Assembly (NCBI RefSeq): GCF_032062105.1
Contig: NW_026931120.1
Coordinates: 124,001-188,000, forward strand
From: Saccostrea cucullata
Lineage: Eukaryota
Reading direction: 5' to 3'
DNA: 64,000 bases
The notes beneath the pieces were generated by a model. That model was given only the letters and a program-made list of their open reading frames with translations, ran no database searches and was not told where the DNA came from. The translations under genes were made by a program, and so were the position numbers. This document shows positions 181 through 63,912 of this stretch, one piece after another; the stretch's first letter is position 1, and every line of letters starts with the position of its first letter.

Positions 181-2659
181 CCGTTACATTTTGCTGGCTT
201 TGTGAAGATCTAGACGTAGATACTGCAAAGAAAAAATGATCGAAATTTATTATCTTTTATTTATTGATTAAATATTTACATGTACACTTTTTTCATTGAG
301 CTACGTTCTTTTGTTAAATTCAGGCCAGAAACTATCTACTAATAGATTACAAACGTGAGTTATTTAAACGAAATTAATAATATACACGTAATATTTATTT
401 GAAATCCACGAACATGTTTGAATTCATATCTGTGGAATTTTCATTATCAAGGGTATGTGGTTGGCTGTACCTTCACAAAGTAGTCCAGTCCAACCTGGGA
501 CACACCCTGCTGAACAAAACCCTGTCTGGTTACATAATTTACCCAGGCAATGAGAGCTACAGGGCTCAGAACACAGGTCTCCATAATATTCCCGAATACA
601 ATCTGGAAAAGCCAACAAAAAAGCTTTATTGAAATTTTCTTTTGTATAAACACCTATAATTAATTTTAAAAATGAATAAACAACAATTTTTATTTTCAAA
701 TTTTTTCACCCTTATTTTTAAACCTGAGAAGAATTAATGAAATTCAGTAAAGGCAAGAATAGAGTGGAGTAATTTTAGAGCATCATAAACAAGTACCTTT
801 GCACAAACCGTCGTCTTGTCTACAACCTTTAACCCCACACTGAGCGTTACAACTCTCGTTACAATAAGCACCGTGTTGTCCGGGAACACAACCTAACACA
901 CATTTCCCACTTCCAAACTCACACGTGCTATTCAAACAGCCGTCTGGACAGAGAATCAGACAATAAGGACCATACGATCCCGGCCGACACCCAGACTTGC
1001 ATTTACCGCCAATTTCCTCGCAGATTCCACCGGTACAGTTGTCTGGACATGGATTTTCACACAGGTAACGTTCACGTTTGGCGAACCATCCTCTCTGACA
1101 ACCCCATTTACAGTAACCAGTAGTACCATCACACATGTCTCCACCTTGGCAGTGTTCACAAGGCTTACACAGGCCTGAATATAATTCCTTATAATAACCT
1201 AATTTACAGGTTTCGCAAACAACATATGGCTTATTTTTATTGTCTGTATATTCTTTACATGAACTGCAGTGAGGAAAATGTAAACTACAACTAAAATCAC
1301 AGTGTGGTAAATGCCAGCCTTTTTTACAACCGTTTTGGCATTCTCCAGATTCGTTGTTACATGTTTCTTTAACACCTTCTAAACAGTGATCACTACAAGA
1401 TTCCAAACATTGCTTGCTAATATATCCATCTTCACATCCGTTGAAACAACCAGTTTCATTACACAGAAGATCACCAGAATTCGAACTGCAGTGATCACTA
1501 CATGGACAGCAGCCCTTTTCTTGGGGATACCAATTTGTCTCATTTTTGCAACTTGAACAAAAACTGTTTTTGTTACTTCCACATTGTGATATTTCACATC
1601 TACAATCTTCTCCGAAATATCCAAAATTACATACCTTACATTTCCCATCGCGTTCACAATCGGTACACCTTTCTGGACACCTTAGCTTACAGTCTTCCCC
1701 ATAAAATCCTGTTTTACATGAATCACAAGTATTGTTATCCGAACACGTTTCACAGACATTTTTGCACGTTCCTTCACAATAAGGGCCGTGATAACCGTTG
1801 TCACATTTCCCACACTTCCCTGTATGTTGTGAACAATATGGGTGACTGCAGTGATCAGTGCATTGTTTATCACAGTGTTCTCCCCACCAACCGTGGTAGC
1901 AATTAAAACAAGTTGTGACGTCAAACTGACATAAGCTACAGTGCTCATAATTACATCTTTCCTTGCAAGTGTTACCGCTGTATCCATCTTTACAAGTCTG
2001 ACACGTTCCGTCTTTTTGATGACAAGAAGTAAACCCACAGTTCTGTGGGCAAGTCTTGTTGCACATTGTACCCCAAAACCCTGCATTACATCCCCAACCT
2101 GTACAGTTCCCAGTGTGTCTTTCACACCCATTTCGGCAATTTGGTGATGGACATGTCATATTACAAGTCATTCCATAAAATCCTTCGTTACATTTATAAC
2201 AATCTCCGGAAATTCTGCACCCCACCATGCAGTTTTCATTACACTTAAATTCACAGCTCTTCCCATAATGTCGATCATGACAGGAAACACAATCACCGTT
2301 GAGTTTATCACAGTCAAGGCACTGTGGGCATTTCTGTTCACACTTTGGACCGAAAAATCCATGGGCGCACTGACCCGAACAATTGCCTGAGGAGTGGTCA
2401 CAGCCATACCAACAGTTTGTGCAGTTATCTGTAAAATTCCTCTGTAATTTGCATTAAATGTATTACAAAACATTTCATCAACCCATTTGTAAAATTAGTA
2501 AGCCACACAAGCTTAAGAAAGAAAGTTCTTTATTCATTTCATTTAAGAGTTACATTTTTATGCCCGTTAAATTTCTTACATAATAAACCATTTGGTTTAA
2601 TTATTAAGAACACTTACAATTGAAATCAGCTCCGGAGGAACTATATGCATTCCAGTAAA
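181..2659 (-). CDS. Multi-EGF/laminin-EGF-like Cys-rich protein (MEGF10/SCARF/PTP-ectodomain-like), partial; continues beyond the left window edge
   Basis: Phase-1 exons with AG/GT ends: 2659-2618 (YWNAYSSSGADFN), 2428-797 (1632 bp; NCTNCWYGCDHSSGNC...GFYGxxC repeats, contains the ORF 783-2228), 602-471 (DCIREYYGDLCSEPCSSHC...GWTGLLCE), 222-181 (Ser/Thr-rich stalk). All exon lengths are multiples of 3. Confidence 0.88.
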
Positions 2660-2749: not shown

Positions 2750-4400
2750 CTGAAAATATTGGTAATTGGTTTTGGAGTAGGGTAAAAAACACCCCTCAAT
2801 TGACATAAATACCTAAAAGTCCTATTTCTGAATGATAACGATGGAACGCACAGGTCAGCAAATTTAACTGTTGTCTAAACGGGTGAGATTATTTTTGTTT
2901 TGATAAGAGAAGTTATAAATCAGCACAGACATAAGACAAGTGTTTTTCTAAAGTTTAAAAGGTATTGAGAAAAATGTCTAAAGAACTGGAAAATAACGTA
3001 TCAAAGAATTGGGTAAGAGTTAAAATGATAAAATAAATTCTATCTATTTCATTGGAAATAAGTACTACGATAAGAACAAATAATTATATGTCTGGATCTG
3101 CTTCGCATAAAAACAAACTAAAATAATTCTGATGAATAAATGCAAAATAGGGGTACATGCCTTCAAAGTAAGTACGCTTTCTTTGCAAACTTCAAATGAT
3201 GTTGATTAAAACCGTTGGAGACACAAAGAAGTAAACAATATATGATGAAATTTTTATCCAGATAAATGTATTCCCTGAAGATATCGAGATGATATGGGTG
3301 ATTAAGTAACCAACTTAAAGTAAGATAGCATTAATAAACAAAAGGTTGTATCTCAAGACATTTATACCAAAGTCCAACCGACATATCTTCTGAAAATATT
3401 GTTGCATCAATTGTCTAATTTTTTCCTGATGTGTACACAAAGGTCTACAAGAGATGAAAAAAAAACAACATTCTTTTAAATAAGCAGAAAAAAGTTCAAC
3501 TTTTGTCATACGACCACAACCTTTCTTATAGGAGATTTCTGTATGTCAGTATTATCGTTCAAATGTGTTGTTTATCCTAGCTGCCGTCTATATACGTGGT
3601 AGATGATCTGAGGAAATACCCTAAGACTTATGGGGAAAAATGTCACGTTTGTATTTGATATGAACAGGTCCTTGTAACTTTATGCAATTAAGAAAGTAAA
3701 ACCGAGTGCAACCTTAGTCCATAGCAAATATTGGATTTAACATCATGGGAAATCGCCCTACTACTATTCAACAGCAACATGAAGGAATTACTACAGTTGG
3801 AAAAATGAAAATGAATATACAATGAAAAGCTAGTGGATGTGTCTCAGATCTGGTGACGCAATGGACATTCCATTGGATACTACAGCTTTAGGTTTCAACT
3901 ATCTTCAATATATATTGTGTAAGAGACATTGAATTATCTTAGACTTAAAATACTCTGCAGATGCTACTGTGGATAAGTGCAATCTAGCTTTATCAAATGA
4001 TTTTAAAAAATGTTGACTTGTTGACAGAAAAGTTGATAGATAATACTAATGAAGTTGGAGAAGAGAAAATTAAGACGAATGCCTGTAAATTAATGCCGCT
4101 GGTACTACTGTGAAAGAGCAACAGGGTTCAACTAAATAAAAAACAGCATTGGTTGCTTTGATAGACAAAAAAGGTATTTCAATAGTATGCAATATATATT
4201 TTAATATATGAGAAGCAAGATATTTCGTGGTAAAAGAATCTAATGGGATCACGGCTCGTGTTCCTTTTTCCAGAAAATGCTACTACCACATCATGATAGT
4301 AAAGAAGAAGAGTATCTGAGAGGAAATACGTGAAAAAAAAACAACAGAAAAGGAGTAAAGAAAAAAAGCAGGCACCAAAAACCAAAAACCATATGATAAC
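2750..4400 (+). mobile_element. Decayed Mutator-like (MULE) transposase pseudogene
   Basis: Frameshifted VQLLSYD/TTFLIGDFCMSVLSF from 3494 resembles the MULE first-Asp motif SYDTTFxLGDFYVS. DIPLDTTALGFNYLQY (~3865), YFVVKESNG..CYYHI (~4220-4290, SWIM-like) and a K/R-rich tail (~4330-4395) follow in the expected order. Many stops; boundaries approximate. Confidence 0.6.
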
Positions 4401-12316: not shown

Positions 12317-15300
12317 ATGACCAAAACGAACTCAGCGGACAGGTGGGCTAAAGTTTTTTTTTTTCAAGTTTATTGTTTTAGCTTCAGCTCCTTGATTTAA
12401 AAATACATCTAGTCTTTCTCGGTTCACGAAAATTGAATAAAAATCTGTTTTCCAAAGAGGCGTTGTCGATGAAATGAGAAAAGAGTTAATTTATTAGAAA
12501 TAAATCTATCTTAATAATGAAATTAGTTATCCAATTTTTTTGTAAAATTATTATAATTATTGTGTGTAGTTTGATTGACTGATTCCCTTAAAAAAAAGAC
12601 TAACAGATTTAAAAATAGGAAGGTTTAAGACAGAAGGAGAGACGAAAGAGTCTATGTAATTTTACCAACGTAGATGGAAAAATAAGGCTTTTTGTGTAAC
12701 CAATTAAATTAATTATTTATTTTTGAAAACATAACACTATTTGAAGTTGTGTTTTCAAAAATCTCTCTGTTCAGTTCCGGTAAATATCACACACGGTCGT
12801 CGATAAATGGCTTAAAGCAAAATAACATGGGGCATGTTACCCTATTGTTTATGTGAGAGAATTTCACAACAGACAACTCTGCATCGACCAAGTTATTTTT
12901 CTCATTCCCTCCATATCTCCGTCACGAAGAGTATATAATGATACATCTACTATGTTGCATTTTTGACAGAAACTCGATTTAATCAAAACAAGGTAGCATG
13001 TCTTTCTATAGTTTTTCAGATACAATATAAAACGTCTCCTGTTTTATACAAACTCTTTTCATTTATCAATTTTTGTATCAATTTTAGGTAAGACCACCAT
13101 AGATAGATTTTTTCTACAAATGAATTTCGTGACAAAGAATCTTTATTTCTAAGGTAATCTGAAGCCACTCTATTTTGTTTAATATCGAGTGGTTCTTTAT
13201 TTCCAGCATTACCATGAGCTTAAGAAAGGAGTCAACTGAAGGCGGAGATGAAAATAAGGATGACACCTGTAAGTATATACCATTTTAAAGAAGTGAACTT
13301 TCCAAAGTGGGTAAAAGGGATAAATAGAAACTTTAGAAATCGTGTAAAGTACATATAAGCCATAGTTATTTTTTTTTTTTTCAATTTTCAGAAGACTGTC
13401 AAAGTCGATATATTTAAAGTCTTTTTAAGAGTTGATGTCTAGCAAAACATACAATAAAGTTAACTTTAAAGGTCAGTCCCCTATCAAGCTTTCTCTCCTA
13501 CCCGAAGTTACAAAGATGATGCTTTAACAGGTCTGGACGATTTCCAAATATGGAAGTCAAGAACGATAACTGAAAGTTGCTATAAATATACTTCATGTAC
13601 ACGTAATTATTTTTCTGTCCAATCAGACAACAGCATTTTTACACACTCCAGAACATATCTTAAAAGAACAAAAAGACAACACGTGCTTTTGGTTTTTTCC
13701 TCAAAAAGATTTTTTCAAAAAAAATCTTTAGAAGTAAGATGAAAACTTTTGAAGAATAAGGTATTCCTCACATATTTACCGTGAACAACTTGCTTTTAAT
13801 CTACTCTTGTTTTTTTTTTTATATAGGGATGTTCAAATAAACCTTGTAAACGCCCATATTGTACATCTATTAAATATGGTGTATTTTCTGGATAAAGAAC
13901 ATATTTCTCAGACCTTTTATAGTTGTTGTTTCGGCAAAGTAGGCTTAGTTTAGCCTTTATGACTCCATCACAATTTCTCAATGAAATAGAATATCAATTT
14001 TACAATAAGACATCTAAGCATGTGTATATACGCAGATGCTTTAACACATGTTAACATATGTTACATCCGTACTAGCTTTGATGTTTGTGTCGAATGTTTC
14101 ACCTGTCAGTTTACCCTGACATTCCTGTTAAATGTCACACGTCTTAACTTACTCTGGTCAAATACATGACCGTACAGTACAATTACCGGTACGCCTATTT
14201 AGCAAGTCAAATACAAATGTGAATTTTATTTAAAAAAGAAAATAGAAAATTAATGGTCAACAAATTAAAGGACAACTATAAATTCTGATTTTCCATGGGA
14301 TTCCAGGCTGATTAAAATATAGCTTATTTTGTTTTATAATATTTTAAACTATTGTTAATAGAAGACTCATTTTGTTTTTGTTTTTTTTGTTTGTTTTTTT
14401 TTGGGGGGGGGGGGTTATACTTTACATTATGTCGATTGCAGTTTTGATCCTTGATTCTCTTCATGTGAATAATTTTGCCCTCTTGGCATTAATTTGGACC
14501 GATTTTCTCATTGTAATTTGGAAAACACTGGATCGCAGTAAAAAAAAAAAGCACCCCTTGACTAAAAAAATGTCACCAGCTTTCAACTTTGTTTAAAAAA
14601 AATATTAACTGTTCTAAAGGAGAAACTGTGGATGTACTGTTGTACAGAATATTCTATAAGTTGTGGAAATTAGATCCTCAAAAATTGCAAAAAATTTAAA
14701 TATTTACATTTTTCGGTGTTGCATCAATTTCGTATTATTGAGAGATATAAGGCTAGTTCTATTTTATTCAGGACAATTAACAGACAAGGTTGGGAATAAA
14801 CAACTTATGTAATTCCCATCTGTTACAGATTTTTTTTTGTTGGGGGGGGGGGGGGTTCACATGAGCGAGGTTGGAATAAAATTAAAAAAAAAAAAGAAAT
14901 AACGAAATAACTAAAGCATCAAATTTCCAATCATAGAAAAATTGAAAGCTGGTTGAAAATTCAGAGAAAGAAAAAAAAAATAATTATTGCGTTTAATTGA
15001 AATTACGAGTTTTAAATTTAAACACAAAAGATCAAGCAATAATTATATAATTGCAATTAATACGTCCCCCTTTTTTTTCAATGTCAAATTCTCTCTGTGC
15101 CAATTTTTTTTTATACAACATTTAACTTACATCACACAAAGTTGCCTTTCAATGAACATTTCCTATAGTATAAGCAATATTGGGGAAAAAAGGCGCTACG
15201 TGCCTGCGTCCCTCTCGAGAATTTCACTCATATGGAGACGCCACCACTTGCCGATAGAGAGCTACAAATTTTGTCCTGTACTCGGCACCCAGGGCAACTA

Positions 15301-17506
15301 TGATAAAAAGAAGTGAAGATAAAAGTGAAGATCATATGAGACAAACAATAGATTTCTAGATAGATGACACACTATATATAAATTATGATTACAGAAATAT
15401 AAATTATATGCTTTTAGGCAAGAATTTAAACCGTTTTAATCCATGTACTAACGACTTTTGGGGGCAACCCTCGTACATGTAAAATGTTTCAAAAAGACTT
15501 GCTTAAGTTTTGTCTGATCTTGTGGTTCACATCAAAACAAAAGAAAAGATAAGATTCACAGTCCTTTAATGTATTTTTGTAAGCATACAGTATTTCAATA
15601 ACCTATTGTTTCTTCTAATAAAAAAGAATGTACTAAAGCACAATAAATAGTGTGTTCCGAAAACTTCAGTCAATTAAAAAATACAGGGAATACATCCGAA
15701 TCAAAGTTGTGCATGTGAAAATGCGAAAATATAATACACTGTGAAACACATTCCAATACAATAGCTCAGTGCTTTATCAAATTACTTACCAAATGTTATT
15801 ATCCGCAAATGGAAATGTCAAAGATCGAGAAAGCAATGATCGTGTATTTAGGATCTGAAAGTATTTGTCATGTCGCGGGCGGCTATGATGTTGGTAAATG
15901 AATACTTGCTGGATAAAAGCCACCATTTTGCGTCTTTGAAATTATGTCTCCAAAGTCAGGAACATTTTGTTGTCAAAGCGATTATCTATAATCTGAAAGT
16001 GTTTCTATTTTAAACAAGATATATATAGTCATGCACTTAAAGTCTGCAAATGCAATTCATGTAGTTTCTGTTTTACAGCATGCACTGTAATGTAATGTAA
16101 AAGTTTCAGTTTAAAAGTAAGCTTTTGTAATGTAATAATTTCTGTTTTACAGTCAGTCATTGTCACACAGAGGGTATTGTAGTATACTTTCCATTTACAG
16201 TATGCTTATGTAATGTAATAATTTCAGTTTTACGGTATGCTTATGTAATGTAATTGATACAGTTTTATAGTATGCTTATGTAATGTAGTAACTTCTGTTT
16301 TACAGTCAGCCATTGTCACATAAATTGTATTGTATGTAATGTAGTTACAGTTTTACAGTATGCTTCTATAATGTAATTGATACAGTTTTACAGTATGCTT
16401 ATATAATGTAATAATTTCCGTTTAACAGTCAGCCATTGTCACACAGATTGTATTGTTGTATAGTTTCAGTTTTACAGTATGCTTATGTAATGTAATTGAT
16501 ACAGTTTTACAGTATGCTTATGTAATGTAATAACTTCTGTTTTACAGTCAGCCATTGTCACATAAATTGTATTGTAGTATAGTTTCAGTTTTACAGTATG
16601 CTTATGTAATGTAATTGATACAGTTTTACAGTATGCTTATGTAATGTAATAACTTCTGTTTTACAGTCAGCCATTGTCACATAAATTGTATTGTAGTAAA
16701 GTTTCATTTTTACATTATGCTTATGTAATGTAATTGATAGTTTTACAATATGCTTAATAATATGTAATAATTTAACTTCTGATATTTACATTTTCTCTGT
16801 TTTTCTTAATTTTTCACATATATTGTATTTTGTATGTATATTTAACTTTTTCAGTTTTACAGTAAATGCTTATGTAATGTAATTGATACAAAAAGTTTTA
16901 CAGTATGCTTATGAAGAAATAATACTTTTTACAGTCAGCCATTGTCACATAAATTGTATTGTAGTCATAGTTTATTTTATATTTTAAGTATGCTTATGTA
17001 ATGTAATTTAATACAGTTTGAAAAGTATGCTTATTATAAAATATAATAAATTCATTGCTATGTTATAATTTTAGAGTCAGAAAAGCATATATTGTCACAT
17101 AGAATGTATTGTAGTACAGTTTCAGTTTTACAGTATGCTTACTATGTAATGTAATAATTTCTGTTTTACCATCACACAGAATGCACTTTAATGTTTTTTA
17201 AGTTGAAATATTGTCAACCGAGTCCACTGTTATCTAGTTTTACAGTAAGCCTTTGTCACACGGAGTACATTGTAATGTAAAAAAAAAATTGTTTTAGAGT
17301 TATCTAATGTAATGTTACAGTTATGATTTCTGTTGTACAATAAACCTATGTAATGTAATAATTTCTATTTTACAGTAACCCATTGTCACACAGAGAAGAA
17401 TCAGGATATTTTTGACAAGAAGGCCCGGAGACAGCTTATCATCGCCAGTATCTTCTGTTCCATCTTTATGATTGGGGAAGCTGTTGGTATGAAGCAAATC
17501 AATCTA

Positions 17507-17553
<47 letters not shown>

Positions 17554-20500
17554 CAGGTGTTATATTATTATGAACATTTTGATTTCCATTTTAGGCGGCG
17601 CGTTAGCTGGGAGTCTTGCTATTATGTCGGATGCTGCGCATCTATTGACAGATTTCGCTAGTTTTGGTATAAGTTTAGTTGCAATGCATTTAACAATAAA
17701 AAGGAGGACAAAGAAATTAAGTTTTGGATGGTACAGGGCAGGTAATACAAATAGAAACTTGTACTATATTATAACACAGACAATTTTCCTCAAACAAGAA
17801 ACACGATTTTACATTACTTTGAGAAAAGTATTTATACCTCTCTATCTTGTGATTTTAAAATACCAGTTCTTTGAAAATAAACGATCATTGCTTGTACACA
17901 TAGTAATCAGGTAATATGCAACACAAACCTGTGTGTAAGGTATCAAGTTTGAATTTCTGCTCGTAAAATTTCTTTCAGAAATCATTGGTGCCTTGCTGTC
18001 CATTTTGTTTCTATGGGTACTGACAGGTGTCCTGGTCTACCTCGGGGTGGAAAGAATTTTAAATCCAGACTACACCATCGACCCCCTCATTATGTTAATC
18101 ACGGCCTCAGCTGGCGTGGTCATCAATGTTATGTTAGTATTTTTGGTATTTTGAAGTTAGGCTCTCCGAAGTACATGTACAAGGTTGTCTGTTCATTTTT
18201 AAGAGAGCACATAGATATATATTTACTTCATTAACTAACTTTTCATTTTATAATTAAAAAGATCATACAGTACAAATGGAAATCATAGAATGCAAATGGA
18301 AAATTATACAATATCAATGGAAAAGATTGAATTGTGCTATATTTATGATTCAGTCATAGAATACACTTCTCTGAATTTAACATTCTGTATAATACTTGTG
18401 TTTATGCAAGGTCTTTGTGCTAAAAATGGAAGGACTGTACATGTTTTCTTAAGATGATATTGAATATTGAATATGAATAGTCAAAATTTTAAAATTATCG
18501 AGTTTATTATCACAGTCCATTAAATTAACAATTAACATACTAGTAATGTGTTGACGTATAGTATACATGAATCTGATATGCAGATAATGGAATGTATTTT
18601 TTATAATTTCCTTTCTCTGAACATGTTGAACTTGTTGATATCCAAGTATACTCTCTTAATCTTGGATAATGTCATGATCTTTTCAGCATGGGTACCACAC
18701 TCCATCAGGGGTCGGGCCATAACCATTCCCACGGTGGCGGTGGTTCCGGGTACAGCCCCACAGACAGTGGCAACCAGAGTCACGAGGAAGACAATTCGCA
18801 GGAAAATAACACTAGTCACCTTCTGGACGATAAACAGAAACTGGTGGAGTACGGTTCGATATCCAATCAAAACGTCCACGACGTCGAGAAAAATCAAAAT
18901 GGCCGCGATGTCGAGAAAGATGACCATGCACATGGCCACTCACATAAGAAAGAGAAGAATATCAATGTCCGCGCAGCATTTATTCATGTACTGGGTGACT
19001 TAGTACAGAGTTTGGGTGTGCTGGTTGCTGCTGTTATCATTTGGTTTAAGGTAATTTAATTCTAGAAAGTTCAGGTTAACAAACTTAACTTGGAAAAAAG
19101 AAATGTTTTATGTACAGATATTTCTCAAAACCGTACATGTAGCAATATACGTATAACCAGTTTGATTAAGCAGTCAGTTTTTTTTTAAAACATGTACATT
19201 GTAGTACATGTACTGATTTCAGTGATATTCCAAGGCAACTCTTTGAAAACAGTGACTTCCAATTCTTATTGAGCTTTGAAATTCCTCAATATTTCAAGTG
19301 TAAAATAAGCCTACTTAACTTCATTTGGTATATATTTGTGATGCACATTAAATTTTGATTAATTTTTATATATTTATTTTTTTTTAATGTAAAATATTAA
19401 TCAGAAATTATTGGCTTCGTGAAAAATTATCAGCCAATTGTATGAAAAAATACAAGAAGGCAAAGGGTCGATTTTAGCTGTTAACAATCTTGTTCTTTAA
19501 AAAAATACAACAGTTAACTATCTGGTCGGATGTATCTTTTTCTAACATTAATTTCTAAAAATATATACGAAGGTAAACGTATTACACTGTACGTATACAA
19601 ATCACTGCTTTACAAGAGCATTACTTTTGAATTATTTTATTATTTTTTTTAAATTGTCAGTGTTATGAAAATATCAATAATTTTTTCTTACTTAAAGAAG
19701 TTCCAGGATGAGTACTTGAATGCTTAACTCTTCAATTTTTTTTAAAAGTATGTTGTCAACCTTTTATCCACTTGAGAAAAGTGTCTAAATTTATTTGCAT
19801 TTTTAACGTTTCAGCCGGAGTGGAAAATTGCGGATCCCATCTGCACTTTTCTCTTCTCAATCCTCGTTGTTTTCACCACTATGCATATTGTCAAAGACAT
19901 TGTCATTGTCCTGATGGAAGGTAGTCAACCCTCAATTATAAAATCTTAAATTTTATTTTAAAGTTTGGAAAAATAATTACAAAAAGCGCGACACCTTCGA
20001 AAAAGAATCACAGAATTTACCAGTTTTGTATCAGTATTTTTAATCATGGATGTGTTCAAGCTAAATAACGTACATGTATTTTCCTTTTCTTGAAATAATT
20101 TAATGTTATTCGTCCCTGAAGGTGCCCCTCGCACGGTGAAATTTGTGGACGTGACCCAGAGTCTCCTTGAGATTGACGGGGTGAGGGAGGTTCACGACTT
20201 GAGAATGTGGTCCCTCTCTATGAACAAAATCGCCATAGCCGTACATCTAGCTGTTGGTTTGTAGCTTTTTAAAATTGTTCGAAATTTTTCAAGGCTAGAA
20301 GGTAACAATATATCAGTTTTTGGAAGGAGTAGGAACAATCTATACGAAATTTTTGAAAAGAAAATAAAAAAAACGGTGAGAAAAAAAAGTGGAACATAAT
20401 GAGGGGTCATGATCAAATAAATTAGAATTGCATCCTTATTATACGTATATGTGTATATGCTGGCCAAATTTCGGAGAGGCAGGTCTGTGTCCTCTACAAA

Positions 20501-44512: not shown

Positions 44513-47500
44513 TTAACTTTTATAAACATACAGCTGTGTGCACACACATAAATTGCACACAAACAGAAATTATGGCAAACAGAAATTGTAAACACTTTAA
44601 TAGAATGAAGTCGATTTGCATATCGATGGGAAAGGATTTTTTTTAACAATGTAATGATATTTAAGAGACATGTTTTAGTAAAGAGATACATTGATCAAAT
44701 TTGTGATGAACAATAAATGTCAAAATAACACCGCCAAAATGCCTCCCTTTCAGCTTTCACGATTTCATCTCGAACACACTTCGCCTGCGGAGGCGGAAGT
44801 TTGACGTCATTCATACTCAGTGACGCGTTTTTAGCCAACATTTCGCCAACTTCATAATCAGGAAGATATCGTTTGTAGCAAGTATTTCCTATAGAAACAA
44901 ATTTTAAGAATGGAGGCGTACAAGGCTAGGACAATCCCCCGCTCTGAGAAAAGACATTTATCAATTCTTAAATTTCATGAAAGCTATATTTTTCAAAATT
45001 ATTATGGTTTATATAATCTTTTACACATTTAATTCTGTATTTCATTGTTTTAATATTTTATTAATAATTTATTTTTCACTCATGTTTTTAGGATATTTGA
45101 AAACAAAAAAAAGGAAAAGCTTCAAGTATGATTCGAACACACTTCATAGCGAAGGGTTTATAGCAACACCCACCGCGTTAACCACTACGCTACGAAGTAT
45201 ATATGCATTACAGTTGTCTGTCAGTGTGATTTAAATGAACGGGTTTGTTGAAGGGTATACTTTTTCAGAATTGTTCGATTTTCATATAGAATGGGTTCAG
45301 ATTCCATTTTTTGACAAATGAAATAGATTTCACATTTACGTTTCCATCATTTAAGCTTTAACGAAGAATGGAGACTTGACCCATTCATGTTTTATGGCTC
45401 TAGTAAACCCATTTTCCACTAAATATGCTTAACTGTCAACTTTGAAATAAAGTTTGTCAAATGATAAATCGTTCAGTAAAGTAAAATAATAAAATGTTTT
45501 GAAGATGACATTACTGAGAACATGATTTTAGAAAAATATTACTTTTCCGTGAATTTTGAAAATTGAGAAATATATTGTCTCAGAGCGAGGATTTGTCTAC
45601 GCCTTTTACACCCTCTTTCTTTGCATATTTAAATGTATGCACAAGTACTCTACATATTTATAGTTTTATTCATTTTCTTAAAATTGTAGTATTAATAAGT
45701 AAACTAAACATAAAACATCAATATACGAGTACATTCTTTGTAAGCAGGTGCACTTTAAATAGGCATGCTGTGCTGACATAGACAATGATGCAGATAAATT
45801 TAAAAATTTTGAAAAAAAAAATTAACAAAAAAGGCACATGTTCAATGTAAAAATTTTGCATGATAATACAAAATGATTGTTTTTACTTACCTAAAGAGCA
45901 CGGACAGAGATCGTCACATCGATCACCAAGACCGGGGGTGCGGACCCAACATTTTCCAGCAGCTGTTATAAATATATTTACAAACTTAATAAGAATTTTC
46001 ACAATAAAATTCAAACTTTATTCAAATAATTTCTATCATCACTCATATAAAATATGCTTCACAATTGCAAACAACGAAACTCGACGTGTAATGGGCATAT
46101 GCAAATGTTTTTTTTTTATCTTATTGAGCCTAAGCTTACTGCTTGTAAGTGAAAAAGGATTTAAGTGAAATTCAAGTTTAAAAAAAATAAAATTTGATCT
46201 AGACTTACTTTGATAGGGATTTAAACTGTTGGGACCATATGTGGCCATGTCCAGTAGCTGTCTATCAGGTCCGTAACAACATCCCACCTTACATTCCTGT
46301 GTGGTGTAGCAGAGGGTTCCCTCACCCATCACGGTGGAGGAAACGGGGGGAGCGGGTGTGGTTACAACAGGAGCTGGACAAAGATCAAGAGCAGAGGTTA
46401 AAAAATATTAACTCCAGAAAGTATAAAGAATATTTCACCTCAAGGACACACAATTGTATTGTTTTGTATTGTCTTGGTTACAATTTTTTGTATTTTTTTT
46501 TCAGTATTTCCGAGTAAAATAAATATTCAACAATTAAATAAATATTCAATTAAATTAGGCCTAGTAGATATCTAATATGAGATATATATATAGATAGATA
46601 CATGTAGATAGATAAGGCGTGTCTTGCAAATAAAGAAATGCAGGATATTTAATGCCAGTTATAAATCACGTGACAGTTTCTGATGAATATCTATGATTAT
46701 TTTTTTCATAGCTCAGTTTTATGAATTAACGTTAACAAAATCTTTATTAGATACATATATAGATAATATACATAGATATATATAATGTTCAGTTTTCATC
46801 ATTCAAACAGAACAAACAAAGGTAGGTGAACTAATTCCACTGTCTTCCAAATTTTACCAATATATCTCCAGATGGATAATCAAAGAACCAGGTAGTGCAT
46901 AAAAGTAATACACAGAATTATTAGTAAAGACAAAATACAATTGCCGTAAACTCAAATGAACTGAAAAAGAAAGTCTGATAGAAATAAATGTGTGTGAATA
47001 TAGGTGATAAAAGAGGTAGTAGGTAGGATATAAGTGCAGAGAAGTGAAAATTAAGCGAAGTGTGCAAACCGACTAGTCAACGTTAGTTTATATGGTATTA
47101 TTTCAAAACATTGTGTTTAGAAAATTATATTAATAATTATGTTAACAGTCGGTATACGAAGAAGCTAGGCGCCGTGTCCATTTCGTTAATACAATAAAGC
47201 TCTGTGCGTATTTAACCTGGGGTAGGAGGCACGTATGCGGGCGTAGTGGGCTGATAGATCATAGCAGCAGTGGTCCAGGGCGCTTGAGGAGCGGGGGTTG
47301 CAATAGGGTCGGGTCTGCCGGCAAAAATAGGCTTAACAGGGGCAGCAGGTACATTCTGAACGTTAGGCTGAACACCGCCTTGTTGTCCCGGTTTGCCAAC
47401 AAAAGGCTGTCTTTGTTGAACCTGTGGCTGCTGATAAGGTGGTTGTTGCTGTTGTTGTTGTTGAACACCTACACCTGGTTGCTGGGGCTGATAAACTTGT

Positions 47501-50047
47501 TGTTGTTGACCAGGTTGTTGATTTTGTAGATAATCAGCAAATGAAGCGCTTGATTGAGTAGTTGTTCCTAATTGTAATGTTTCGGGAAGACCACCGGGCA
47601 TTTGTTGATTGCCCTGTGATTGTTGCGGTGGGTACGGACCTTAAATTTTTCAAATTAATGGAATATCATTTTGAAATTTGTTTTCATTAAAGTTTCAAAG
47701 TATGTATTCAAATCTATACAACAAAATGTATATATCATATATTTTCAAAACACTTATAATTCTTGTTTTATTTCTGAGTACTAAAATCAGTCTTACCTGG
47801 TTGTTGCCACTGATTTTGCATTTGTTGTTGCTGTTGCCATTGGTTTTGTGGATCAGGTTGAACTTGCTGGGGTTGTTGTTGTTGTTGTTGCCATTGATTT
47901 TGTGGATCAGGTTGTTGTTGTTGTTGTTGTTGATTTTGAGGTGGATACCACTGGTTTTGCTGAGGCTGTTGTTGAGGCTGTTGGTTATTCTGTTGGGGAG
48001 GCTGGTATTGCTGTTGTTGGGATCCAGGTCCTTGATACCACTGCTGCGGTTGCTGTGGTTGCTGGGGTTGAACCTGGGGTTCTTGTTGTTGAGGTGGCCA
48101 CTGTTGTTGTTGTTGTTGACCTTGTTGACCAAGTGTATTTACTTGAGGTTGATTATTTTGTGGGGGTTGATACCACTGGTTTGACTGTTGTTGTTGTTGC
48201 GGTTGTTGTGGTCCTTGATTAGGCTGTTGATATTGGGGTTCTGGATTTTGAGCAGGTCCTTGATTCCAGCCTTGTTGCTGAACTGCAGGTTGCTGCTGCT
48301 GTTGAGGTGGTTGGCGAGCTTGTTGTGATGGTTGCTGATTATTATTCCACTGCTGTTGAGCTGGTTCTGGTTGAGTTCCCTGCTGAGATGTTTGCGGATT
48401 GTTCCATTGTGGCTGTGGCTGTTGTGGCCAACCTTGCTGTCCCGGTTGTTGAGATTGTGGTTGTTGGTATATTTGTTGTGATTCAGTTGGTTGTGGCTGA
48501 AATTGTTGCTGTGGTTCTTGCTGTTGTTGATAGGGTGATTGTGCTACTGGTTGCTGCTGCTGATATTGTTGTTGTGGGTCGGGTTGTTGTTGCTGCTGCT
48601 GTTGTCGCTGATACGGCCAGCCTCCTTGTTGTTGTTGCTGCTGCTGCTGTTGTTGATTTGAACCAACTGTTTGTGGATATTGCACATTACTAGACGGCTG
48701 CTGATTTGGATATTGTTGTTGTGGTTGTTGGTTTTGTTGCTGTTGTGGTGTTCGATCTGGTCCAAATGCAAATGGTTGACTCTACAGAAACCAAGAAATA
48801 ATTCAAAATCACATGAGATGCCAAATAGTTCTAATTATTTGTCAAAAAACAGTCAATATAGAGAGAAATTACTATAATGTCGTGTTTTTTAAAATGTGTA
48901 TAGTTCGGTTTAATGCGTTTTCTCCTTTCATGTCCAAGAACAAGTGCCTGTTCTAATTTTTCATGATGAAGAATTCCTTATTTTTATAACCGTGTCTTGT
49001 TACCTGTGCCTGACTTAGTTTGGTCTGGGAGGTTTGCTGGACGGGTTGGGGGATCTGGACTGTTTGTGGTCTCTTCACTGCCTGGGGCCGCTGTATTGTT
49101 TGTGGTATCTGAACCGTTTTCTGTGTGCCTCCTCTACCTGCCGTTCTCTTCCATGTGCTTGACGGTTTAAAAGAAAATGTCCTTTTCCCTCCACCGGCTG
49201 TAAATGTTTGCTGAAAACATAAGGAATATTAATAATTATTAATGATATTCTGCCTTCGAGAAAAGAGATATGAACATTGTTTTAATTTCCTGTTGTGAAA
49301 TTTAAAGAAGAAAAAAATTAGTGATTCCTACTCTTTATGTCTTTGTTACATCAGGTGTATAGCAACAGATGAACAAATAAAACGTAACGATGTATATAAC
49401 ACTAAAACATTTCTGTATTTTGTAGTATATACATAACTTTTCTCATGAGTCACATTTAAAATTATTAACCAAACATTTCTGTATTTTGTAACATTTACAT
49501 TATTTTTCTCATAAGTCACATTTAAAAATTTTAACCAAACATGTCTGTATTTTGTAACATATACATAATTTTTCCCCATAAGTCACATTTTAAAATTTTA
49601 ATTCCAATTCTGCATGGCCGTTGGATTGAATATATATATGAAAAAAACAAAGGTGTTTTATGGCTTATGCCATAATGACTTATCCCACACATTATGCAAA
49701 GAAAATATGCAAGACATACATAGATGATTGCCCTCAAAAATAATATCATTATTCAGCAAGTCATGTTATAATGTATTGTGCCTATTTTGAATGGCATATC
49801 AACTACATTAGAAAAAGGTTTCATTATCGAATAATTATAATAAATTTCAGTTTAAATCATGGTGACAGTTGAATGCAATTCTAATTCAACAAATTGCTAA
49901 CAATGATCGCTCATTCATGGGTCACTGTGTTCATAAACTTGCTGTGTGTATGATGGACATATTTGGACACTCCCTTATACATAGATAATTTTGATTAATA
50001 ATTTATTAAATATAAGAAATATTGAAGAATGTGCGATTGGTCCACGT

Positions 50048-50083
<36 letters not shown>

Positions 50084-53000
50084 AAAACAACAATCATGTC
50101 TAAATATAATAAATGTATGAATGAATAAAAAAGATATAGATATAAATAACATATATTTTGATATAATTATTTTTTTTAAATGATGAAAGAAAAAAAATTC
50201 GAAATCTTATTTACAGCTATTTAAAGAATATTCATATTTACATAATACATGTTTAAACTACTAGCAATTCATTTTTGAGAGACGTGCAGAGTGCTTTGCA
50301 CGGACAACTCAAAGCGGATTCGTAGACAATTCGTATCCTGTCTTTAACAAAAGCTTTCAATTTGATTAATATGTGTAGGCACTTTCTCAAGACAATTTAC
50401 ATACGATTTTGCAAATGAGCACGTTCTACATTCAAACGACCATGCAAGTTGCACGACAGTTTTAAGCTCTTTCTTTGTCAACAACAGCGCTGCAGTCAGT
50501 GTACACGCTTTGAAATTAGCACTGTACATGTACGTTACTTACGGGTTTTCAATATGGACAGGAAACGTGTCTACTTATCAGAAATAAATAAAATCTATCT
50601 ATTTTGATAATTGTTTCGAATTGTTACAGTACACTGAACAACACACAGCTCTCAACATATGTACGCAATATATATGTATCACTGCTTTAAAACGACATCT
50701 GACATAATCAATTAAAGATTCAATTATTCATTTTTTCCCTAAAATGTCTAAGACATGAATACCGTATTTTAATGTCATAGGTTATGTGTTAATTTTTGTT
50801 GACAGATTGATTTAATGATACATATTTCATAGGAGTCTCATACTAATTGAATCTGTGTCTTTTTTATGACGCTTGCCGTGAAAGATCTGTCATTTTATGA
50901 CATAAAACCAATCATGTATAGATTAAGTTATTAATTTCATCACATAAATCTTAGAAAAAGATTTATTTTCATTTAGATACTGCTTAATTGTTTAAAATGG
51001 TAAGATTGTAATTTAACAAAACAGATATACATTTGTAACAATAAATGATGTAAATTTTGAATATGAAATAAAGATTTATTGAATTTGTTTTGTTTTGTGA
51101 GAATTTTAATCTGAAAAATTTGAAACGCCAGAAACTGACTCAAAATAATAGTTTTCTACATCATGTGTTTAAGGACAGATGATACAAACAAAAAATGATG
51201 CCTGGAATGGTAATATTTTTGGGACTATTTTTGGTGTAAATGATAATAAATCAAAATCAACAGAAGTTGTAAACCTTCTATATCATGTTCAAATTCTACT
51301 TTTCTGCAACCATCCTTATCATTCTTTGCATTTTTTGTTACTTAAATTCCCAGTAATATGAATCTTTTAATAAAAAAAAAGTATACGGTTAAAAGTTTCA
51401 TTCTACTCATATAAGTAATACTTCATTTTTTTTTTATTTTCAATTTTTTTTTTAAAGTTTGTTTGTATCATGTCCTTTAACAGGTAAACAGGGTTATTTA
51501 GGAAAAAATAGGACATATCCTGAAAATGAGATAAATAGATTTGCCTGAGCAATCATACAAATGTACCTTTTTTCTTAAATAAAGGGGTTGATTATATGTA
51601 TAAATATAATAATTATATGTTAGTAAAAGTCTGAAGTATTTTTCTCCAAGAAGACGAACTACATATTAAAGACTAATTTGCATAATGCTTGTTGTGATTT
51701 CTATTGATTCTCATAAAGAAGCAAGAATAATTAAAATTAATTAATTGTCCGACGGGTTCAAACTCAGATAACAAAACCATTTGTTCTTCTGGGGGTGGAT
51801 CAAGGATTTTATGTTGTAAAGGGGGCCAGGATGCAGGGACAAAACCAACGGAAATTCTGTTCACAGGACTCCTTGCTGTTTTATTGTTTCTTTAAAAATG
51901 GCCGTCTTAATTAATTTATGTTACATGCATGCTCGTAATTAAGACTTTTTTGCATTGTACAAATTTAATGAAATTTTAAACGGTAAGTAATATATTTTGT
52001 ATTTATGAAGTACATCAAACACTCTCTCACTGTTTGTTTATTTCATTTATTTAAATATTCATTTTATTTTTCTACTCATTGCTTTAAAAAAAAGACTTAT
52101 TCATTGAACAACGTATCAATTTCATGAAGAGAATCAACAATACAAAAAGTTAAAAAAGAAATTCTGTTCACTGAGTTTTCATATCTAGATAAATCAATCA
52201 TGGATTATTCTACGTAAGTTATTCATTAGGGATATTATAAAAAGGTATTTTATAATTGTTCATCACGATTCCCGACATAATAATTAATTTCAGTTTGACA
52301 GTCTTAAAATTACGTACATGAAATGCATTAATTTAGTGCCTGTCTACTAGATAAACGAAGCCTATGTTACTTCACGCGCTGCTATTTTTCATCGTTTTAA
52401 TTATGGAAATATATTATTCACTATACACCTTTCAAACCACGGAGTCTTGTATCAAGTAGACACATCGGTGCAAAGGGTTTGATTATAGAAATAAAGTTCA
52501 ATAAAGGAATTATTGAAGTCTATATTTCATGTAAAAGAAATATTCAGTTGTACAGAGGGTCAATTTACTGTGACAAATAGAGAAATTGTGGTCACACACA
52601 ACGACTTACGAGAACATTTCCGTGTACGACAAGGTAACAAGCATTAAAGGCGAGATGTTTACTTGTCATAATAAGAAAAGCATTTCCATATAAATATAAT
52701 TATTTATCGTAAATGAAGTTTACGCATTAATGACATTTCACATTGGATAAAATTATTCATAAATTTTCTCAACTAAAATTGAAAATAATCATTAAAAATA
52801 TAAGACCTAGAAAATTTTTCTCATGTGAAATGACATTTCCATATCTAATTTTTTTTCTTCATACTTACCAACTGAGTTTTGAACTTATTTAGCAGTAATA
52901 TAAGGAACAAATAAAATGTTAAAAGGAAGAAAGATAAACTTATCAGAATCCATTTTCGAACTCCGATCAAATCCACATTTAATCCGAAATCCACATGTAA

Positions 53001-53142
53001 CTATTAATAGAAAATATACCAAATCCATATTCAACGAATGACAATATCTTTCATAAATATTTACCCCATAGACAGAAGAAAGACAAACGTTCATCGAAAG
53101 TAAAAGAGTCACAGAAAGTCTTAAAATCCTGCGGCGCTCCAT
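40873..53142 (-). CDS. Secreted Gln/Pro-rich low-complexity protein (~704 aa) with a C-terminal 12-Cys colipase/prokineticin-like domain and two alternative last exons
   Basis: Exons 53142-53065 (signal peptide MERRRILRLSVTLLLSMNVCLSSVYG), 49210-49004, 48781-47797, 47639-47217, 46373-46209, 45962-45891, then 43237-43053 or 41054-40873. All have canonical splice sites and compatible phases (0,0,1,1,1,1). Confidence 0.88.
41385..41600 (+). repeat. Degenerate Cg170/Helentron-associated satellite-like monomers
   Basis: cccacccatccccataggtcatga...aacaaaattgaatatataactacttgaggatgcttc...ggccccgccctacccca resembles the oyster ~166-bp satellite (recognised from memory, not searched). Confidence 0.45.
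41665..42105 (+). mobile_element. 5'-truncated Penelope-like element lying between the two alternative last exons
   Basis: ACFTYEQFLKRGKLLTNKLMKQEYQQFRLKSSFRKFFGRYNDLVSKYDLSLSQMLT plus the conserved 3' tail. Confidence 0.85.
43053..43237 (-). CDS. Proximal terminal exon A of the Q/P-rich gene
   Basis: Phase-1 acceptor ttttcag; (G)FTCDQDYNAIYPGDPKYVEGGKKLFFKPPRQCKDSKIVKIKQAAFWECYKDHACSGFPNV*. Confidence 0.85.
44479..44508. repeat. (CT)n microsatellite; a (GA)n tract also lies at ~50052-50081
   Basis: Direct inspection. Confidence 0.9.
44920..45608. mobile_element. Probable ~690-bp MITE
   Basis: Left ggacaatcccccgctctgagaaaagacattt vs right aaatatattgtctcagagcgaggatttgtc (imperfect inverted repeats). 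Confidence 0.45.
49403..49595. repeat. 66-bp tandem repeat, ~3 copies
   Basis: aaacat.tctgtattttgta...agtcacattt at ~49405, 49471, 49537. Confidence 0.85.
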
Positions 53143-54514
53143 TGTGTCCTCTTGTCGGCTCTTATCCCCGTATACTAATCCAACCAAACAAGACAATTAC
53201 CTGTACACTTTTAAGCGTGAGTGGAATGGTAAGAAGATGAAATTATTAATTTCTGGCAGATCACGTGACTGCAATATGACAAGATCATTTATGAACATTA
53301 CACATTGTAATATTATCGTCAGTGCTTAAAACTTTATGGAAATGCAAATAAGATTGGTTTTACATGATTGGAGACTTTTGGAAGTCTTTAAAAATTGTTT
53401 TTGAATTATAAATTAGATCTTGACAATAACTTTTCTTTCAAATACAAATATATATGTCACTACATGTGAAAAACAACACACCAATATCATTAGGGCGTAA
53501 ACATCTTGGCATTAAAATAGCACGAATTAAGATAGTTTGTTCACCTTAGGATAGTTTGTTTCATATTTAGTCGACCCAGTGATGCCTGTGCCTGCAAATT
53601 TGTAATAATTAACAGAATTTTAAATCAGAATTTATTATTTAGTTAATGAAAAGTTTATGAAACAGTATACTTTACAAAAATTTTACAAACATCGTTACAA
53701 ACCAAATATGTTTGATACATATTTCTGGGCCTATTTCTGTTGCAAAGATTTAAATATTACATTTCTAAAAATATTTATTAAGAAACTGTAGATCTTCTAT
53801 GATGTTCAAACTTCTACTTTCCTACAACCATCTTTATTAATTTATACAAATACTAGTACATGTATTTATTCACTTAAAATCCCAATATTGTGAAATTTTT
53901 AAATGAAAAATTAAAAACTACATGTTCACTAAGATTTTTTTTTCATTTTACGTAACAAATTATGACACCAATTGTTATTTTCAATTTTTGGACAAAGTTT
54001 GTTTGTATCATTTGTCCTTAAATTTCGATCTGATAACAAACTTGAAACACATAGACTTGTGTTTTATTTTGTGTGTCCTTTGAAATACTTTTATCAAGCA
54101 TTGTTCCACAATTGCAAAGAAAGAACGTTGACCACCATTTTCAGAAATCCATACGTAATTAAATGAACTTTTAGAAATTGTTCTATAAATTCAAAAATGA
54201 TAAAATGAAAGTAAATTGTGTAATAATGCATGAAGAAAGACAGGACCTGCTACTTATCAAACACACTGGAGCCTTGCGATTGGTTTCAAAAAGTAATTTT
54301 TTATTGACAAGTTGTATTGGAATACTTAAGCCTTTTGAAAGTACCCACGTTTTTAGCAATCTTCAAGATTATCTAAAGTATTTTTATCTCTCTGAGCTTA
54401 AAAATGGATATAAATGGAATTGTAAGAAGACGATTTCAACATGAATTTCGAATTTAAAAGTTAGTTACGGTATTAAAACAGAAAACAGGAAATGTCGTGT
54501 GTGGGTGAAATATA

Positions 54515-59778: not shown

Positions 59779-62700
59779 ATGGATGCTGAAGAATTCCGTA
59801 AATATGGACGAAAAATGGTTGACTATATTGCGGATTACATGGAAAACATTCGTGAACGTGATGTAGTACACAAAGTTACCCCAGGTTACCTAAAGAAGCT
59901 ACTTCCAAGCGAGGCTCCAGAGAACCCGGAAGACTTTGAAGAAGTGTTCAAAGACATTGAAAAATTTATAATGCCGGGGGTAAGTGCTATAGCTTCATCA
60001 TAACTTTCATTTCTCTTGGTGTCTTGTGAAGATATCTTGAAAATACATATTGATGTATTCTGTTGCATTGCTGAACGTGGATTTTATTTACAATAAATAA
60101 TTTAAATAAAATGAAGAAAATCAAAAGCTTACTTCCAATTCTTTTTTCTTGCAATTGTGTGTTGACACATGATGCAAATATAAAAGAAATATTTGCATGG
60201 CTTGGTTTATAATTTTCTTTGGTTCTAATGATACATAATATAAAATTTTTTTATTGACACATGATAAAAAAATATATATAAGAAATGAATGCATAATTTG
60301 ATGTGAACAAAATTATTAATTTTACTTACAATATTACAAACTACTTTTATCAAAATCAATTCTAAAAAATGATACATTTACGAAAAATATCAAATTTATA
60401 AAATATCAGGGGTGATCAAAATTGAACACTTACGAAACCACAATTCAGATTGAAACAAAAATTGTACAGCCATACACTTTATAAATAGCAAAAAAAATTC
60501 CTTGTTTGTGTCACAATGTGAAAATGACGTCACATTATACATTATATGTTGTATATATTTAACACCTTTGTAGACGTATAATAATTTGCACGTTTATTAA
60601 GGCAAATGACTTCTTATAAATTCCATCAATGATTGGATTGATCGTTTTAGCGAAGGAAAATAAAATATTTGTTGTGACTAAAATTATTCATTTTACTTAC
60701 AATATTACAAACTAACTACTTAAAACAGAAATGAATGAATAAATTTGTTATCAAAATCAATGTCCTTAAAAAGATTGTTTTATTTGCATGGCCATGTACA
60801 TTTACGAAAATTTCTATATATGCAAGGAAAAATAACTAAATCTATACAAGTGATGATAGTAATTCCACTTACTATGAATAAACCGTTTATTTCTTAGCAT
60901 TTCGTAATCGCAAAACAATGTTTATGAATATGTTTTGTTCGCCAGAGAAGAAAATACATGCTTAGATCTATTATTATTATAATTTTTTTGGAACATATAC
61001 TATACAATATGATTGGTGATTTTTAATGACATCTTGAATGTTTTCTGTCGTCATGTCTTATTTTTTTCCCTGTCCTTCACTTCTGATAACAATTTGTTGT
61101 CACTGAGAACATTTTCGATCATTGATAACCCCTTTTGTTCTATGTGTTATCAACAGAATAAGATTCTTATCTATGTCGGTTTAACCTTTCATATCAATAT
61201 ATGGAAGCGAATTTATAAAGCAAATTTTTTTTTCTATACACTTTTACTAATGATCTTAACTGCTTTCATATGCAAAAATATCGCACCGTTTTTATTTTTA
61301 CTTGATATACGCATCTCTTGTGTATAAGCAGTCCTGAAAAAGTAAATTCCTTTTAGTGTCATAATGTGAAAATTTTGATTAATATAGTCATGATTATTTT
61401 CCCGTTTTAATCTTTGTAATACCATTATACATATATATCTCACGATTACTTGCTGCGCACTAGCATGTTATCTATATAAAATGCATTCCTCACTAATGAA
61501 AAACAAGACTAATTAACTTTTTTAAAATGTAAATCCAGCCATTCAATGTTGAAAAGAACAAAGATTTGTGATATTGCAATATCATGAGCTTTTTTTTCTT
61601 TAAGCTTTCTCGAGATACTAGTAATGGTTTATGAAAAGTATCAATTCTGTGATATTGCCAATCTCTGGATTGCTTTCTGATTCATCATTCAAACATTATT
61701 CAAACTGATCAGAATCTTACTTTACTATCATTATAATTGGAAGATTTCCCTAATCCAATGCAAATTTTGCCACGTTTATTTAGAAATAAGAAAGAAAATC
61801 TTAATTATGATTTATATTGATGCAGTAGGCATGGAACACATTAATTAAGTTTCTGAAAATAGAGACATCATTAGTTAATTAATAATTTTGTTTAAAAGAA
61901 ATATATCAAACATTTTTACATGTAAGATACTATATTTGATATTATTCTACGTATGTACGAGTTAGCCGTTTCCTTCCTTTCTTTAAAAAAAACTAAACAA
62001 TGACATACAATTTCAAACTTGATATTGGATTATGGTTTTAATTTCTATAGAAACCTGTCACACAAATACATGTACATGTGTTTTATCGACTTAAGTTATG
62101 GTGTTCACGACAACTTCTGTAAACTTAAAACCTCTTTAGAAAAGAAAAATATGTATGACAACCTTCTAGCAAACAATCAATAAGTCTCTCTAACATAGAA
62201 CATAAAAAAATAATCAGAATTTAACTCTGCAATGTATTTTTTCTAGGTAACTCACTGGCACAGTCCGTATTTTCATGGCTATTTTGCTGCAGGAAACACG
62301 TATCCATCCATATTAGGAGACATGCTTTCAGACGCTATTGGTTGTATAGGATTTTCATGGGTAATATCACTTCTTGAAAATTCGATGAAACGTTTCATGC
62401 ATTTTCTTTAAGACAAAAATGTATTGCATATATAGCACTGTGTGTATTTTTCTAAATGCTAAATAAAGAAAATGTGAATATAATTTTGTAAGAAATTCTT
62501 TATATGAGAAGGTACAATATACACTTATCCACTGGGTGTGAGTGGGATAGCTCTTTTATCAAACCCGCGACAGAGAACTATTCCCCGAGGGCTTATATAA
62601 GGGTTTGATAAAAGAGTTATCCCACTCACAAACAGTGGATAAGCGTTTTATTGTACTGATGTATAATATAATTTCTGAGGTTTGAATTTTTTTGCAGTAA

Positions 62701-63912
62701 GATAATACTGCAAGAATAATCTGAAATCCTGATGACGTCACAATGCTACTGAAGTCATTATGACATCATCAGTAGATAGATCTATCGTTGGAAATCAAAA
62801 TTGGAGGCAAAAATTGCATGAAAATTTTCCGAGGGTGGATAGCAAAAACTATACCCCGGGGTATAGCTTTGCTATGCGTGAACTATAAAAGATAGCTATT
62901 TTACCTTCTGAACTTTATATAGGAAACATTTTAACAGAAGTATAATAATATGTATTGTTGATGTTTCATCAAAAAATGACCAATCGCACTTTATCATAAA
63001 TTTCCAGCTAACTGTATCATCTACATCAACGATTTACAAAAACTTAACTAAAAGTTATTGAATTTTTCTTTCCTTTGATCAGGCTACAAGTCCTGCATGT
63101 ACCGAACTGGAAGTTATCACCACGGACTGGTTGGGGAAGATGTTAGCACTTCCAGAAGAATTTTTACATTGTGGACCAGGCGATGGCGGTGGCGTTATCC
63201 AGGTTTTATTGATTTACTACTCGTCTATTATTATTAATTTTAAATAATCAAACATTACAACGTAATCATAAATCGAAAATATCAAGCAGAAAAGGTAGGT
63301 AAGCTAATGGTCAAAAACATCTCCATATGTTTCATACATTAGTAAAATGAATGGTCAATAAACTATTGCAATGCTCTGTTTTCAGTCCACAGCCAGCGAG
63401 ACCGTTTTCCTGTGTTTGTTAGCAGCCCGAAATAAAATTGTCGATAAAATAAAGAAAGAGAAACCTGACTTAGAAGACAAAGAAATACTTTCCAAACTCG
63501 TTGCATACTGTACTGATCAGGTAAGGCCTAAACTGTTTTTTTAGTGTTGGTTGATTGGAGTCATAAAAAGATAATTTATGAACAGATATTTACTGCTTTA
63601 GGCGAACTCCTCCGTTCATCGGTCAGCTCTTTTGGGTGCTGTTAAAATGCACAAATTAGACAGCGATTCGAATTTCAGCCTTCGAGGTGACACTTTAAGG
63701 AAGGCAGTCGAAAACGACAAGAAAGAAGGATTAATTCCCTTTTTCGTAAGATCTTTTCTTTTTAAATATAAATGTTGATTTTTATGATAAGCATCACGAA
63801 TGAGCTTGACTAATCAATCTTATCCTACCCTTAAATCACTTTCAGCTCTGTGCGTCACTTGGGACAACTGGAACATGCGCATTTGATAATATCGAGGAGT
63901 TGGGACCTATAT
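59779..63912 (+). CDS. DDC: Group II PLP-dependent aromatic-L-amino-acid decarboxylase family enzyme (DDC-like) with His192->Asn; partial, continues beyond the right edge
   Basis: Exons 59779-59979, 62247-62360, 63083-63202, 63386-63520, 63602-63745, 63846-63912 (201/114/120/135/144/67 bp). Motifs [77 protein letters not shown]. Symbol is family-level; may be a paralog. Confidence 0.95.
60408..60660 (+). mobile_element. Fragment of the same mariner-like family as 20589-21548, in DDC intron 1
   Basis: aggggtgatcaaaa TIR-like start and ataatttgcac..ttattaag.caaatgacttc.tataaatt.catcaat match the reverse complement of ~21200-21548. Confidence 0.6.

Follow-up and report, generated by a model that had tools for sequence, protein, structure and literature searches.

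A DDC-family gene at the 3' end of a 64,000-nucleotide stretch of the Saccostrea cucullata genome (hereafter, the window) encodes Asn where DDC, the enzyme behind dopamine and serotonin synthesis, has His192, and this raises the question of whether a bivalve enzyme of this family might act as an aromatic aldehyde synthase and whether, if so, it shares its origin with insect DHPAAS. In DDC, His192 together with Tyr332 protonates the quinonoid that follows CO2 loss, and its replacement by Asn leads to a reaction with O2 that yields an aldehyde, NH3 and H2O2 (bioRxiv 10.1101/404970). All the insect AASs studied to date have Asn at this position and all the AAADs have His, the former including one Trp-using enzyme (PMC10380194). 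Asn192 has been shown to be the main determinant of DHPAAS activity in Bombyx, where aldehyde activity is 95% for the wild type, 67% for a variant with Tyr79-Phe80 and Asn192, and 22% for Asn192His (PMC6494836), while the Drosophila enzyme needs both Asn192 and Tyr332 (PMC13651850). The same change has arisen separately in the PAAS of the Myrtaceae, an exclusive aldehyde synthase (bioRxiv 10.1101/404970). Two caveats apply: mammalian DDC (PMC7497351) and poppy TyDC (bioRxiv 10.1101/404970) become only bifunctional when His-to-Asn is introduced alone, and two natural plant AAADs with this change display little or no activity in yeast (bioRxiv 10.1101/404970).

Gene structure and active-site residues

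Spliced from the contig that contains the window (C13257), the gene comprises 12 coding exons and encodes 515 amino acids without an internal stop. The exon model comes from a local search in which the exon boundaries were moved slightly and which left one solution with GT-AG borders at all introns. Exons 1 to 6 lie inside the window on the forward strand, and exons 7 to 12 just past its end. Exon 1 (59779..59979, residues 1-67, with the ATG at 59779) gives one best match in a search of its own genome and is 85% identical to that of the orthologue L041. Exon 2 (62247..62360, residues 68-105) carries Trp71, Gly78, Tyr79-Phe80 (codons at 62280-62285), Ala81, Ala82, Ile101 and Phe103, and is followed by exon 3 (63083..63202, residues 106-145) and by exon 4 (63386..63520, residues 146-190), the first residue of which is Ser146, where DDC and TDC have Gly. 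Exon 5 (63602..63745, residues 191-238, phase 0) harbors Asn192 and the clade-specific His196 and Ser198, and exon 6 (63846..63912, residues 239-260) contains Thr246. The remaining exons (G000:C13257:188284-193137) supply Asp271, Asn300, His302, Lys303, Tyr332, Gly352 (equivalent to Gly354 of DDC) and the stop codon. The gene is single-copy in the assembly and shares the same 11 intron positions with the genome's own His192 DDC gene (C8047).

The splice that the original prediction had proposed between exons 4 and 5 is confirmed by the sequence, with exon 4 ending in YCTDQ before a GT donor at 63521 and the AG acceptor at 63600-63601 preceding an exon 5 that starts with GCG AAC. A gapless phmmer alignment of exon 5 to residues 191-238 of human and pig DDC places the AAC codon (63605..63607) at the His192 position; exon 5 also aligns without gaps to residues 197-244 of HDC among solved structures. 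An alternative, His-coding exon 5 was considered and rejected, since introns 4 and 5 (81 and 100 nt) are too short to contain its 144 nt. Editing of the A-to-I type was likewise discarded as a means of restoring His, given that it offers no route from AAC to CAC.

Inspection of the downstream exons reveals that the gene is not broken and that the catalytic-loop Tyr332 and the PLP-binding Lys303 are both retained, as are Trp71, Tyr79, Phe80, Ile101, Phe103, Thr246, Asp271, Ala273, Asn300, His302 and the Gly354 equivalent. The protein matches PF00282 and, with Lys303, Asp271, Thr246 and Asn300 in place, belongs to the group II PLP-dependent aromatic amino acid decarboxylases; the His192 of canonical amine-forming DDC is replaced by Asn, and the residue pair of insect DHPAAS and AAS, Asn192 with Tyr332, is present. 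At near-invariant sites, the bivalve Asn192 clade presents the changes A78G, P81A, G146S/T, E196H/P, A198S and C311L, and it keeps some TDC/HDC-like states (Ala82, Gly83 and Leu90), the AGN motif at 82-84 being the sole TDC-like feature of the window protein. The Tyr79-Phe80 pair was correctly predicted, and the Phe79-Tyr80 motif is indeed absent; its proposed contrast with an insect Phe-Tyr was, however, overstated, for the 109 insect Asn192 proteins include 70 with Tyr-Tyr and 17 each with Tyr-Phe and Phe-Tyr. Hence, Tyr79-Phe80 does not mark a difference from the insect enzymes.

Directly downstream of the Asn192 gene, on the same strand and 3.8 kb past its stop codon, lies a seven-exon gene for an EgtD-like SAM-dependent methyltransferase (PF10017; G000:C13257:196942-200590, corresponding to L031:5942-9590), of which two further copies are found on C21811. 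This neighbor may have some connection with the metabolism of aromatic amino acids or amines. Elsewhere in the window, the list of open reading frames points to genes for a MEGF-like EGF/laminin-repeat protein (783-2228, minus strand), a SLC30/ZnT-like zinc transporter that has a loop rich in His (17468-19059, plus strand) and a Gln/Pro-rich secreted protein (45860-53196, minus strand).

Conservation of Asn192 in bivalves

Exon 5 was used as a phmmer query and the contigs of the best matches were then fetched. Among the 137 matches informative at residue 192, 133 have His and three have Asn, and it is the Asn-type sequences that match best. The orthologous genes on the fetched contigs have exon boundaries identical to those of the window gene. 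Asn192 orthologues occur in about six other datasets, including Meretrix and the shipworm Bankia, with protein identities of 65-81%; one locus is complete (L041, about 80% identical to the window protein) and the rest are partial (L042, L043, L038, L039/L040, L055 and L135/L136). L043 stems from a Meretrix Hi-C run (SRR32575148; bioRxiv 10.1101/2025.04.01.646383) and L135/L136 from Bankia setacea gill metagenomes (IMG 3300000111/110; PMC7329324), with the host read from contig names, whereas L039/L040 and L055 are similar to shipworm sequence. The Asn192 clade thus ranges over venerid clams, shipworms and Saccostrea cucullata. Across the orthologues, synonymous differences have reached saturation (pS 0.85-0.96) against a pN of 0.13-0.23, which implies long and strong purifying selection.

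Codon 192 reads AAC or AAT, and not CAC, in all eight orthologue loci (L038-L043, L055 and L135/L136). The occurrence of both codons at the same site in independent datasets excludes chance or assembly error and, with the 515-aa reading frame intact, the orthologues effectively refute the notion of a sequencing error or a pseudogene, to which we attach a negligible probability; on this sequence comparison, Asn192 is not an assembly error. Among the remaining animal DDC-family loci from the metagenomes scanned, several of which are annelid to judge from the sample series, the Asn type was not seen. A homologue search with one orthologue exon returned only the exon itself, and the ESM Atlas gave no meaningful match.

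Some of these loci display additional features. Degenerate duplicates of exon 8 lie in introns of L042 (at about 13640-13720 and 16392-16448), and degenerate duplicates of exon 9 in introns of L041 (at about 15486-15545 and 15605-15694). A metagenome contig with 27% GC and short introns (L075) carries a His192 DDC-like gene with the AAGN motif at 81-84 that is found in the bivalve Asn clade. This gene falls within the DDC group and could be a His-retaining relative.

Phylogenetic position and origin of Asn192

Three trees were built locally under two models with column 192 removed, from a sample in which mollusc and deuterostome DDC are thinly represented and several rows are partial. The original prediction had called for a tree with DDC, TDC, HDC and insect DHPAAS, and in all three the window gene falls inside the DDC group (96/99, 96/98 and 95/97); together with its orthologues it makes up a clade of its own (100/100), separate from the genome's His192 DDC and TDC and from HDC. 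Placement on the DDC branch is congruent with Ile101, His302 and Gly354, in addition to the grouping with DDC over HDC and TDC. An HDC identity was rejected, with Leu101, Ser302 and Ser354 missing and the protein outside the HDC clade, and so was a TDC identity or origin, with the gene outside the TDC clade and lacking Asn302, Ser354 and the TDC intron pattern.

Asn192 is present in 109 of the 120 matches of the insect set, some of which bear the names amd, DHPAAS and sawfly AAS, and these enzymes group with arthropod DDC in each tree (89/88, 92/90 and 91/84). Ten alignment columns join them to insect DDC and two to the bivalve clade, and a joint clade of bivalve and insect Asn192 enzymes appears in none of the three trees. 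Both the tree placement and the column counts favor convergence, and Asn192 most likely has an origin separate from that in insect DHPAAS and from that in the TDC-derived paralogue described below. The independent evolution that the original prediction held possible is what the best trees show, but an ancestor shared with insect DHPAAS is not rejected in the AU test (p 0.132 and 0.168). The bivalve clade and insect DHPAAS would in that case represent one ancient protostome Asn192 duplicate, lost in most other lineages, a scenario we consider improbable. It is compatible with the lack of a firm branching order at the base of the DDC group and with the tendency of the bivalve clade, with its TDC/HDC-like Ala82, Gly83 and Leu90, to branch early; it is at odds with the consistent association of the insect enzymes with arthropod DDC, with the ten columns against two, with the Asn type not being seen among annelid loci, and with the ease of the His-to-Asn switch, a single base change that plants and the TDC-derived paralogue have undergone as well. 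The stem branch of the bivalve clade is long (0.32-0.48 changes per site), and its placement as sister of the genome's own DDC is not rejected either (AU p 0.085). Slightly less probable again is that the bivalve protein is a true aldehyde synthase sharing one Asn192 ancestor with insect DHPAAS. Were this so, aldehyde-based catechol cross-linking would be an old protostome device, retained in insects and, for the periostracum, ligament or byssus, in bivalves, and not an insect invention for life on land.

Other decarboxylases in the same genome

Beside the window gene, the Saccostrea cucullata assembly contains a His192 DDC on C8047, a His192 TDC on C7663 and at least two copies of a second, fast-evolving Asn192 decarboxylase type with the motif ANVCVQK. 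The latter is partly modelled on C7083/C11917 (L005 and L006, at about 3046-3156 on the minus strand), has a close relative on C3072 (L003, L049 and L054) and is found as fragments on C7043 and C20151; its residue 192 was read in the C7083/C11917 copies only. This second type clusters with the genome's TDC (support 99/92-96), and its union with the window gene in a joint clade is rejected (AU p 0.009). Both enzymes have Asn192 in one genome, yet they are about 44% identical and belong to different groups. One bivalve genome hence holds two separate His-to-Asn lineages, a TDC-derived paralogue and the DDC-group window gene, and the sequences suggest that the same switch was gained twice separately in one lineage. 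Canonical HDC was not found in the whole assembly with Haliotis and Saccostrea HDC queries. It is present in other bivalve material (Ruditapes, Mya, Mytilus and Saccostrea), and its absence here may reflect an assembly gap or a loss.

Predicted activity and alternative readings

The candidate aldehyde synthase of the original prediction is supported in part, in that the gene encodes an intact DDC-group enzyme with Asn192 and is conserved in bivalves; its activity is predicted from characterized enzymes. It seems reasonable to postulate, with a probability of about 0.7, that the window gene is a bivalve-conserved duplicate of the DDC branch that acts as an aromatic aldehyde synthase, either pure or bifunctional. 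From the sequence, the PLP site is intact, with Lys303 as the binding residue and Asp271, Ala273, Asn300 and His302 kept. By reference to the characterized enzymes, the quinonoid carbanion formed upon decarboxylation would be poorly protonated without His192 and would react with O2 to give an aryl-acetaldehyde, NH3, H2O2 and, as a by-product, some amine, while the His192 DDC and TDC of the same genome would still provide amines. The DDC-like pocket (Ile101, Phe103, His302 and the Gly354 equivalent) makes L-DOPA the first candidate substrate, which is likely but not assured; Ala at position 82, as in TDC and HDC, instead of Thr means that Tyr, Phe, Trp or 5-HTP are also possible. The "possibly bifunctional" wording of the original prediction finds support in the Bombyx variant that keeps about 67% of aldehyde activity, the Tyr79/Phe80/Asn192 combination of which is that of the window protein. 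A role in tanning of the periostracum or shell, or in defense, is a guess.

Weighing against an aldehyde synthase are the additional changes of the clade at near-invariant sites (A78G, P81A, G146S/T, E196H/P, A198S and C311L), and the protein might instead be a decarboxylase that still makes mostly amines, at a slower rate or from another substrate, in which Tyr332 protonates and the extra active-site changes offset the lost His192. The retention of Tyr332, the several clade-specific substitutions near the site, the amine still made by mammalian DDC H192N (PMC7497351) and the lack of a detected canonical HDC in this assembly agree with such an enzyme, which we nonetheless deem unlikely because the active natural Asn192 enzymes so far assayed are aldehyde synthases. 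His196 was contemplated as a substitute catalyst and dismissed, since shipworm orthologues have Pro at this position and it cannot be an essential or universal stand-in. Amine formation in the capacity of an HDC is further contradicted by the missing Leu101, Ser302 and Ser354, and by the canonical HDC of Ruditapes, Mya, Mytilus and Saccostrea. The near inactivity in yeast of two plant His-to-Asn AAADs evokes, in turn, an almost inactive or non-catalytic subunit with a part in DDC heterodimer regulation or in PLP or substrate binding; all other catalytic residues are invariant across the clade and under strong purifying selection, and such a subunit appears very unlikely.

Implications and comparison with known systems

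DHPAAS has been called insect-specific on the basis of a survey of arthropods and vertebrates, and for this reason has been put forward as a target for selective insecticides (PMC13651850). A survey of bivalves assigned each species a single AADC, a single HDC and a single TDC (bioRxiv 10.64898/2026.08.17.745212). No paper linking an aldehyde synthase to molluscs was found in the literature searched. The present analysis adds a DDC-group Asn192 lineage in bivalves that is predicted to be aldehyde-synthase-like and for which a place within the insect DHPAAS clade is not favored. With a fourth type that is conserved and carries the aldehyde-synthase residue, molluscs would join the animals with aldehyde-synthase chemistry, and a chemistry reported among animals only in insects may occur in clams and related bivalves too. 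The window gene would then be a candidate enzyme for catechol-aldehyde tanning or for H2O2/aldehyde defense in shellfish, and insecticides targeted at DHPAAS could pose a non-target risk to bivalves.

With canonical DDC/AADC (the C8047 gene and those of human and Drosophila), the window protein shares about 58% identity, Tyr79-Phe80, Ile101, the NPHKW motif and Gly354; it differs from them in having Asn for His192 and in the replacement of Pro81, Thr82, Gly146 and Glu196. Eucalyptus EgPAAS, a plant His-to-Asn aldehyde synthase that prefers Phe, belongs to the plant TyDC lineage and is of independent origin. Insect DHPAAS (the alpha-methyldopa-resistant protein; PDB 6JRL) and the sawfly PonAAS2 are, like the window protein, DDC-branch PLP enzymes with Asn192, share with it Tyr332, His302, Lys303 and the Gly at position 354, and also coexist with a retained His192 DDC. 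Insect DHPAAS features a hydrophobic O2 tunnel and an ordered 320-350 region (PMC12078590). Identity of the window protein to these insect enzymes is nevertheless only 49-56% and the clades are separate: Ala81, Ser146, His196 and Arg197 stand in the window protein where insect DHPAAS has Pro, Gly, Glu and Lys, and the window gene, unlike that of insect DHPAAS, retains the 11-intron DDC structure. Finally, the insect enzyme is described as insect-specific (PMC13651850), whereas the Asn192 gene reported here, the function of which is predicted, resides in bivalves.
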